NCBI GenBank assembly: GCA_964057225.1 | Contig: OZ059898.1 | Location: 8,742,001-8,806,000, forward strand | From: Auanema rhodensis | Lineage: Eukaryota; Animalia; Nematoda | Direction: 5' to 3' | Length of the DNA stretch: 64,000 nucleotides | Shown here: piece by piece, positions 44,213-46,636 of the stretch | How the letters are laid out: every line of letters begins with the position of its first letter | How positions within the stretch are numbered: position 1 is the stretch's first letter | Translations under genes and position numbers: made by a program | Notes under the pieces: generated by a model | What the model was told of the DNA's origin: nothing | Seen by the model: only the letters and a program-made list of their open reading frames with translations | The model's database searches: none

Positions 44213-46636
44213 ATGTCTGATAACCAAGAAAAAAAATTGAGCAAAAAGTGAGTAATAATGATTGTAAATAAGCTACTGGCCACGGCTCTACGAGCTTCGC
44301 CAGGGGCTTTGTATGCCCGTGGCTTCTCCCTCAGAAGGTTAGTCAGGCATGGCTATCCTTCTATGCTCACCAGATTAAAGTCTTACTAATGTATATTTAT
44401 TCCAGCGAACAAAAGAGGCTTGCTAAGCAAGCCCAGAAGGAGAAAGAGAAAGCTGAAAAGGAAGCTTTGAAAGCGCAAACTGCTCCATCTGGCGCTGCTA
44501 AGGTTTTGCATTTATTTGTAGTTAAAAAAAACAAATATTTTGAAGGAAAAGAAAGATGCCGACCCATCCGATCCTCAGGAGTATTTCAACATGAGGGTTA
44601 GAATGATTGAGAATAGAAGGAAAGCTGGTGATAACCCATTCCCTCACAAAGTTTGTGCTAAATTTAATAAGAATTTCAAACAATAATTTATGCATTTTCA
44701 GTTCCATGTCTCGATTTCTCTCTCTGCATTCATTGAGAAATACCAACGTCTTAATAACGAAGAAGTTCTGGAGAATGAGCCTGTAAGCATTGCTGGTAAT
44801 TCCTTATATTTGGTATAATCTTAAATTTTTTTTAAAGGGCGTATTTTCTCAAAGAGAGAATCCGGTAGTAAGCTTGTCTTCTACGATGTACACGGGGAAG
44901 GAACTCGGTTACAAGTTATGTCCAATGCTAGATATCATAAAGGTGATGATTTCACTGGTGTTCACGAAAGAATAAAACGTGGAGATATTGTTGGATTTGT
45001 CGGATACCCAACCAGGTAATTACCAAACTTGACTTGTGTTGTGTATTCAATTCTGATCAACTTAGATCTAAGACCGGAGAATTATCTATTCTTCCTACTG
45101 AAGTCGTTCAGCTCACTCCTTGTCTGCATATGCTTCCTCACACTCATTACGGTCTTAAGGATAAGGAACTTAGGTGCGTATAATATTTTTTTTCTTTGAA
45201 AGTTTTCATATTTAGATATCGTATGCGCTATCTTGATCTTATTATGAATCCTCAGGTCAAGAATAATTTTGTTATCCGTAGCAAACTTATCACATTCCTT
45301 AGAAAATACCTTGACAACATGGGATTCCTTGAGGTTGATGTTTTACTTTAGTTTATCTAACTGCTTTTTTTTAGGTTGAAACTCCAATCATGAACCAAAT
45401 TGCTGGAGGAGCTACTGCTAAGCCTTTCATAACTCATCACAATGATCTGAAAATGGATCTCTTCCTTCGTGTAGCTCCTGAGCTCTTCTTGAAGGTTTCA
45501 TAATTTTTAGTAACTTTATTCTATTATTATTTTAGATGCTTGTCGTAGGGGGGATTGATCGTGTTTATGAGATTGGCCGCCTTTTCCGTAACGAGGGTAT
45601 TGATATGACTCATAACCCAGAGTTCACAACCTGTGAATTCTACATGGCTTATGCTGATTATGAAGACATTATTAGAATAACTGAAGATCTTCTTTCCCGT
45701 AAGCATAGCTGTAAGATCTCAAACAAACTCATTTTCTTTAGAAATGGTTCTTTTCATTCACGGATCATATAAAATTAAGTATCATCCCAACGGACAAGGA
45801 AGCGAACCATCTTATGAGGTATTTACCGTAATAGTATCATCAGATTATTTTAAATTAAGGTTGATTTTACTCCACCCTTCAAAAGAGTAGACATGATAAC
45901 CGGATTGGAAGCTGCCTTAGGAATGAAGGTTCCTTCTCCTGATACACTTCACACTGAAGGTTTGTATTTATTACTGTCTAAATTGCTATGTTAATGTTAA
46001 AAGTTGGAAGTTACGTTTTTTTTTATTTCAGAAGCTCGTCAACTACTTGACAACATCTGCAAGGAAAAGAATGTTGACTGCTCTGCTCCAAGAACTACTG
46101 CCCGTCTCTTGGATAAACTTGTTGGGGAATTCCTTGAGAGCACTTTTATCAATCCTACTTTCTTGGTTGGCCATCCTCAAATTATGAGCCCTCTTGCTAA
46201 ATGGCACAGGTTTTATTGTTTTATTTCTTCTAATTTATTCTGTACAATTATAGATCTATTCCCGGCCTTACTGAACGTTTTGAGTTGTTTGCTGTAACTC
46301 GCGAGATCGCCAATGCCTACACAGAGTTGAATGATCCTATTACCCAAAGAGAAAGATTTGAACAACAAGCAAAGGTTTTTGCCAATTAATGCAATCGTTA
46401 ATGTCAAATTTCTACAGGACAAAGACGCTGGAGATGATGAAGCTCAACTTATTGATGAGAACTTCTGTACCGCTCTTGAGTACGGTCTTCCCCCTACAGC
46501 CGGATGGGGAATGGGTATCGACCGTCTCAGTATGCTGTTGACTGATAGCAACAACATCAAGGAAGTTTTATTCTTCCCCGCTATGAGACCTGAAGAACAA
46601 GGTACAGGACCAGCTCCTGTTGAAGAGCAATCTTAA
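44213..46636 (+). CDS. kars-1: Lysyl-tRNA synthetase (class II), cytosolic isoform
   Basis: [74 protein letters not shown]; many short introns. Confidence 0.97.
44258..44337 (+). CDS. Alternative N-terminal coding segment of KARS: mitochondrial presequence [26 protein letters not shown]
   Basis: ATG at 44258, 26 codons + AG, then an AG|GTTAGT donor at 44338 joining the acceptor at 44405 in frame (S-EQKR). Rich in R/L/A/S with no D/E. Confidence 0.85.

Follow-up and report, generated by a model that had tools for sequence, protein, structure and literature searches.

A hairpin with a conserved intronic arm is predicted over the mitochondrial 5' splice site of a nematode lysyl-tRNA synthetase gene

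The lysyl-tRNA synthetase (LysRS) gene described here is the single KARS gene of a rhabditid nematode, and the 5' splice site that gives its mitochondrial form lies in the stem of a local RNA hairpin (hairpin 2), the intronic arm of which is conserved in a related species. We think it somewhat probable that this hairpin acts as a cis-element of the pre-mRNA that covers the splice site and keeps the mitochondrial isoform to a fixed and probably minor share. The DNA analysed, referred to as the window, is a stretch of 64,000 nt from Auanema rhodensis (GCA_964057225.1, contig OZ059898.1, 8,742,001-8,806,000, forward strand) with a G+C content of 31.5%, introns of 41-72 nt and SL1 trans-splicing. 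The gene is encoded on the + strand at 44166-46636 and has the catalytic core of a class II LysRS, as judged from PF00152 matches to its exons, which are 79-87% identical to nematode KARS proteins.

The layout of the 5' end was read from the contigs of four public runs (X1-X4) of one 2019 study, which were placed on positions 43600-45400; the runs were labelled as RNA by guess, but their contigs are spliced. The preliminary description had proposed two ATGs, two donors and one acceptor for this gene, and the contigs bear this out with both splice joints and with a trans-spliced end (Table 1). The sequence CCAAGTTTG is the 3' part of SL1 and is joined at 44165/44166, and all introns farther downstream, up to 45373, are confirmed as well. 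Donors 1 and 2 are both in phase 2, with donor 2 lying 90 nt downstream of donor 1, and two different N-termini are joined to one common exon. One of the two is presequence-like: the translated extension has 26 residues, a net charge of +4 and no acidic residue and ends in phase 2 like exon 1a, its presequence character being judged by eye (basic, no acidic residues) and not by a predictor. When donor 1 is left unused, ATG1 reads a 12-codon upstream open reading frame (uORF) that stops at the TGA at 44249-44251, 6 nt before ATG2, which has an A at -3. Donor 2 has a nonconsensus U at +3.

Table 1. Positions of features at the 5' end of the KARS gene, counted from the first letter of the window
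Feature	Position	Strand	Remarks
SL1 trans-splice acceptor AG	44164-44165	+	Mature mRNA starts at 44166; X3/X4 contigs start at 44164, CCAAGTTTG being their loose end
Exon 1a, coding part	44213-44247	+	Cytosolic ATG1; 11 codons plus 2 nt; joint 44247->44406 in X3/X4; frame checked
Donor 1 GTGAGT	44248-44253	+	Gives the cytosolic form via 44247->44406
ATG2 and presequence exon extension	44258-44337	+	X1/X2 contigs unspliced over 44218-44337, then joint 44337->44406
Hairpin 1	44279-44323	+	GCCACGG 44279-44285 / CCGTGGC 44317-44323 plus inner stem; not conserved
Small hairpin GGCUC-UAC-GAGCU	44284-44296	+	Common to JU1783; closing pair G-U versus A-U (RNAalifold)
Small hairpin GGGC/GCCC	44304-44318	+	Common to JU1783; one G-C to A-U two-sided change
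Hairpin 2, 5' arm	44333-44344	+	Last 5 nt of presequence exon plus intron +1 to +7; contains donor 2
Donor 2 GTTAGT	44338-44343	+	Gives the mitochondrial form via 44337->44406
Conserved intronic block ATGGCTATCCTTCTA	44349-44363	+	Contains hairpin 2 3' arm, 44351-44362; local score 12 versus JU1783
Shared exon 2	44406-44502	+	Acceptor common to both donors; joints in all four runs

The X1 and X2 contigs start exactly 30 nt before donor 1, which is k-1 for k = 31, and such a start marks a branch in the de Bruijn graph at which a spliced and a read-through continuation both exist. From this start position we infer that both isoforms are present in the X1 and X2 samples and that exon 1a is retained in the mitochondrial mRNA. 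The contigs of samples S1 and S2 take the donor-2 path, while those of samples S3 and S4 take the donor-1 path and carry the SL1 end. This shows that the representation of the isoforms can differ between samples, and it is all that contig paths show: contigs carry no counts and drop minor variants, so isoform use is not quantifiable from them. Since the donor-2 path was assembled in two of the four RNA samples, the use of donor 2 is not rare in every case. The depth of the KARS contigs was 4-8 times higher in S1/S2 than in S3/S4, contig depth being a poor measure, and the difference between these pairs of samples could come from stage- or sex-dependent isoform use. Farther upstream on the + strand, the transcript contigs of another gene (43636-43914) stop at 43912-43914, which leaves about 250 nt to the SL1 acceptor of KARS; this gene was taken for a kynureninase from its ORF sequence alone, and its exon has no Pfam match. 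The KARS contigs bear SL1, not SL2.

In hairpin 2, the segment AGAAGGTTAGTC (44333-44344) pairs with GGCTATCCTTCT (44351-44362) through 10 Watson-Crick pairs and one G-U pair. The pairing had been described as 11 of 12, a count that stands with the G-U pair included, and the remaining position is a U-U mismatch. The donor is buried in the stem, as had been proposed: its GT lies at 44338, the 5' arm covers positions -5 to +7 and with them the whole U1-pairing stretch (-3 to +6). The site so covered is used alternatively, with the joints 44247->44406 and 44337->44406 both found in the contigs of the one study. The hairpin folds with -14.6 kcal/mol (z -4.9), and none of 200 dinucleotide shuffles was as good, a statistic affected by the choice of the hairpin boundaries after the fact. 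The hairpin region has a G+C content of 52% compared to 31.5% for the window, so that composition contributes part of the stability, for which the shuffles are a control. When the 64 kb were scanned on both strands in steps of 1, 30-nt windows of -14.6 kcal/mol or lower occurred only inside the second predicted structure, hairpin 1 (on both strands), and at hairpin 2. Both hairpins persist in contexts of 143 and 351 nt, in the latter as the centroid fold, and both are confirmed at the coordinates given in the preliminary description. A search of positions 43000-47500 with the Rfam covariance models gave, up to an E value of 1, a single match, which was a chance match to a long noncoding RNA (E 0.82) located elsewhere in that region.

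Relatives of the gene were collected by using single exons as search queries, one by one. When the last exon was used in a HMMER search of representatives, mostly fragments and no full-length nematode protein were obtained, and a word search with the ORF of the motif-2 exon yielded fragments from nematodes together with some loci. The short exons were scattered when MAFFT was given all exon rows, and only cleanly aligned rows were kept for the query alignment; a full-length scaffold with single-exon rows as the query alignment then yielded full-length nematode KARS proteins. The closest of these to the exons of the window is that of Auanema sp. JU1783 (87% identity over 550 aligned residues), and a search seeded with the JU1783 protein found nothing closer than JU1783 itself. 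The genomic loci compared were those of JU1783 (L008), Caenorhabditis elegans (L009), C. brenneri (L010), C. nigoni (L011/L012), C. angaria (L014), Ancylostoma ceylanicum (L013), Necator americanus (L015) and the nematodes L001 and L003, while the fragment-derived loci L002 and L004-L007 were without the 5' end or too distant. A contig titled human-gut metagenome (L020) was excluded from every comparison, and a scan of metagenomes with a conserved 18-mer gave 104 chance hits in G+C-rich contigs, none of them KARS-like.

A common layout was seen in JU1783, the four Caenorhabditis species, Ancylostoma, Necator, L001 and L003, in which a short cytosolic exon is followed by donor 1, by ATG2 and a basic presequence, by donor 2 and by a common acceptor before the exon that encodes EQKRLAK. 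The longer isoform is annotated in C. elegans, C. brenneri, C. nigoni, Teladorsagia and hookworms, and the two-donor architecture is therefore already known. At L001 (4674-5480, GCA_002287525.1), donor 1 is followed only after 309 nt by the presequence exon, which has a TTTCAG acceptor before it and may therefore be a cassette or a separately trans-spliced exon rather than the product of a nested donor.

The 5' leader and the introns of the gene no longer align between the window and JU1783, with the sole exception of the intronic block ATGGCTA(T)CCTTCTA, which contains the 3' arm of hairpin 2. The donor-2 intron has a local score of 12 compared to 5-8 for the interiors of 11 other homologous intron pairs, which thus score no better than 132 nonhomologous intron pairs (mean 5.9, maximum 10). 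Hairpin 2 of JU1783 folds with -12.8 kcal/mol (z -4.5); 9 of the 12 pairs are unchanged, 1 has a one-sided change and 2 near the loop are lost, and 91% of the cells are paired. The hairpin is also kept in the RNAalifold consensus of the two sequences. A 1-nt deletion in the JU1783 block removes the U of the U-U mismatch, and conservation of the block as coding sequence was rejected because this indel shifts the reading frame. No compensatory, two-sided change was found in hairpin 2 between these two alignable sequences, and the comparison is one of conservation, not covariation. The 5' arm is constrained in any case by the splice site and by coding, and it is the free, intronic arm that this alignment shows to be under constraint.

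A different hairpin was found at the same donor in Caenorhabditis. There, a 40-nt block around donor 2 (TCTGAGCCAAAACACTCG|GTTAGTCGAYGTGTCCTCAGAT) is identical in C. elegans, C. brenneri and C. nigoni but for one base (Y), and it is unrelated in sequence to hairpin 2 although it spans the same donor. It is predicted to form a two-tier hairpin of UCUGAG/CUCAGA and ACAC-UCG/CGA-GUGU with GUUAGU in the loop (-12 kcal/mol, z -2.2 to -2.7), and the sole variable base is a predicted bulge; with three nearly identical sequences, this is again conservation and not covariation. The intron just after donor 2 scores 14-19 compared to 5-8 for two other homologous introns, and beyond +22 it is unalignable. 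In C. angaria, yet another sequence is found, with exon and intron segments that pair around the donor. The geometry in Caenorhabditis differs from that of the Auanema clade, since the GU sits in the 6-nt loop and the cost of opening donor 2 (4.3-5.0 kcal/mol) is ordinary compared to constitutive donors. Exon 1a with donor 1 (ATGAGCGAGCCAGAGGCCAAATTGAGTAAGAAGTAAGTG; L009 1501-1540, L010, L011) shows one substitution among the three species, synonymous sites included, which suggests a nucleotide-level constraint on the uORF/donor-1 region, too.

The predicted cost of opening donor 2 in the window is the highest of the gene, and the size of the contrast varies with the context length. With 130-nt contexts the margin is small (9.5 kcal/mol compared to 8.8 or less for the other donors), and with 75-nt contexts it is clear (9.05 compared to 0.98-6.99 kcal/mol for 10 constitutive donors). 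In JU1783, donor 2 costs 11.8 kcal/mol compared to 1.1-7.3 kcal/mol in a set of 12 donors (75-nt contexts). Donor 1 of the window costs 0.7 kcal/mol in a 130-nt and 5.5 kcal/mol in a 75-nt context. Two efficiently spliced constitutive donors of the gene cost 8.4-8.8 kcal/mol (130-nt contexts), and a high predicted cost alone therefore does not prevent splicing. Donor 2 was costlier to open than donor 1 in all 10 loci examined, which may just be due to the A-rich lysine codons near donor 1. Hookworms, L001 and L003 show no unusual structure in the donor-2 region, and in most species the 75-nt windows that surround donor 2 are ordinary in their z-scores. The earlier suggestion that hairpin 2 sequesters donor 2 is supported by the conserved intronic arm, by donor 2 being the costliest donor in both Auanema species and by the Caenorhabditis analogue, while the position of the GU in the Caenorhabditis loop speaks against it.

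Hairpin 1 had been proposed to aid the recognition of the mitochondrial start codon, and this idea found no support. Its 45-nt fold is stable (-22.8 kcal/mol, z -3.1, 1 of 200 dinucleotide shuffles as good), but 9 of its 18 pairs are broken in JU1783, where the region folds into two small hairpins, and only these two are kept in this region in the RNAalifold consensus of window and JU1783. In the window, hairpin 1 is about 9 kcal/mol better than this alternative. According to what Kozak reportedly found in 1990, a downstream hairpin aids the recognition of AUGs in a weak context, with an optimum near 14 nt. Hairpin 1 resembles such an element in being a stable stem about 18 nt after the AUG, but ATG2 has the A at -3 in its context, the stem starts 21 nt from the A of ATG2 (44258) and the structure is not shared with JU1783. 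Among synonymous recodings, the hairpin 1 segment falls in the lowest 0.3-1.2%, while the whole exon is unremarkable (5-28%). Most likely, hairpin 1 is a by-product of G+C-rich Ala, Arg and Gly codons or is lineage specific. Its 3' arm, CCGUGGC, can alternatively pair with GCCAGGG at 44300-44306 (-17.7 kcal/mol for 44295-44324), the two folds being mutually exclusive. In the mature 5' leader, a 13-bp stem (44181-44193/44216-44228) encloses the cytosolic ATG1 (-13.7 kcal/mol, z -4.0, 0 of 200 shuffles as good), and this stem is absent from JU1783 (z +0.3). An 18-nt run in the presequence exon that is identical in the window and JU1783 is nothing special for these two species, as two runs of at least 18 nt occur in 1066 nt of the other exons.

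In the mechanism that we propose, one SL1-capped pre-mRNA carries two competing 5' splice sites and one acceptor, with donor 1 giving the cytosolic enzyme and donor 2 keeping the second ATG and the mitochondrial presequence. The last 5 exon and the first 7 intron bases at donor 2 would pair with an intron segment 13-25 nt downstream, and the U1 snRNP would have to open a structure of about 9-12 kcal/mol to bind. Limited access of U1 to a suboptimal, acceptor-proximal donor 2 would let donor 1 compete, and the 12-codon uORF in the mitochondrial mRNA would further limit mitochondrial LysRS. Hairpin, U at +3 and uORF may together hold the mitochondrial share, even though donor 2 is acceptor proximal. 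Formation of the hairpin in vivo, inhibition rather than help of donor 2 and the setting of the isoform ratio are the steps at which this model reaches beyond the sequence comparisons.

Regulated 5' splice sites commonly have intronic elements a short way downstream, and the conserved intron block could instead be the binding site of a splicing regulator, of the pyrimidine-rich CCUUCU type, with its complementarity to donor 2 being incidental. Conservation of the block as sequence, without two-sided changes, would fit such a site. We nevertheless regard it as improbable, as Caenorhabditis has a different conserved sequence at this place that is again complementary to the exon flanking the donor and varies only in a bulge, and as the GCAUG motif in the hairpin loop of the window is absent from JU1783. 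It is also unlikely that the two hairpins simply result from the high G+C content of the presequence exon within an A+T-rich genome and are functionless as structures. Such an origin would fit the G+C content of the region (52% compared to 31.5% for the window), the reverse complementarity of the Ala codon GCC and the Gly codon GGC, the unremarkable minimum free energy of the whole exon among synonymous recodings (p 0.05-0.28), the half-broken hairpin 1 of JU1783 and the ordinary 75-nt donor-2 windows of most species. This account suits hairpin 1; hairpin 2 does not fit it, as its 3' arm is intronic, noncoding and uniquely conserved.

We likewise give little credence to hairpin 2 as a regulated switch, the stronger reading in the preliminary description, or as an enhancer of donor 2, in which temperature, a helicase, a bound factor or presentation of the donor would shift the mitochondrial:cytosolic ratio. 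The different paths of the S1/S2 and S3/S4 contigs, the GU in the loop rather than the stem in Caenorhabditis and the two alternative partners of the hairpin 1 3' arm could be read in this way. However, the sample difference has no evident link to structure and comes from contigs, with the limits given above, and the loops hold no conserved ligand-like or tRNA-like motif and the region no Rfam match. A covering hairpin that limits the use of donor 2 is the reading that we prefer to these three. Two further candidates were rejected: a mirtron, as hairpin 2 covers only the first 25 nt of the 68-nt intron together with exon bases, and a mimic of the tRNA-Lys anticodon for autoregulation, as the loops GGCA, UUCUAU and GUUAGU share nothing.

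It is poorly understood how cells with one synthetase gene set the ratio of its cytosolic to its mitochondrial enzyme, and an imbalance of KARS1 is a cause of disease in humans. The conserved hairpin at the mitochondrial donor would be a concrete handle on this question, and the 40-nt block of C. elegans kars-1 makes the idea directly testable by genome editing. A wider proposal, that rhabditids including C. elegans share a structural RNA device at the mitochondrial kars-1 donor and that the mitochondrial share of LysRS is retuned when temperature, a helicase or a bound factor opens this device, we hold to be quite unlikely; if true, it would amount to a structure-based rheostat of organelle targeting for an aminoacyl-tRNA synthetase. 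Hairpin 2 would in addition provide a nematode case to the few well-supported examples of local RNA structure that controls 5' splice site choice.

The human KARS gene uses a cassette exon, in contrast to the two nested 5' splice sites of the nematode gene. Like other bifunctional KARS genes, the gene of the window joins alternative N-terminal exons of one gene to a common exon to give a cytosolic and a mitochondrial enzyme. C. elegans kars-1 (T02G5.9) has isoforms of 596 and 572 amino acids (P0292 and P0293), and both enzymes of human KARS1 arise by alternative splicing (Tolkunova et al. 2000, cited in PMC9593246). In the literature searched, we found no description of RNA structure at the nematode kars-1 donor site. 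By analogy, the hairpin would join the stem-loops already known to sequester 5' splice sites, in a gene for which alternative splicing was already known. Stem-loops over a regulated 5' splice site have been described for human MAPT exon 10 and for TSL2 of SMN2 exon 7 (PMC1802598). As in these, the end of the exon and the first intron bases pair with a downstream intron segment and cover the U1-binding positions, and the covered site is suboptimal and alternatively used, the hairpin here being predicted from sequence. The nematode case differs in that the GU of Caenorhabditis sits in the loop, in that two donors compete for one acceptor in place of the inclusion or skipping of an exon and in that the choice decides the organelle targeting of a tRNA synthetase.
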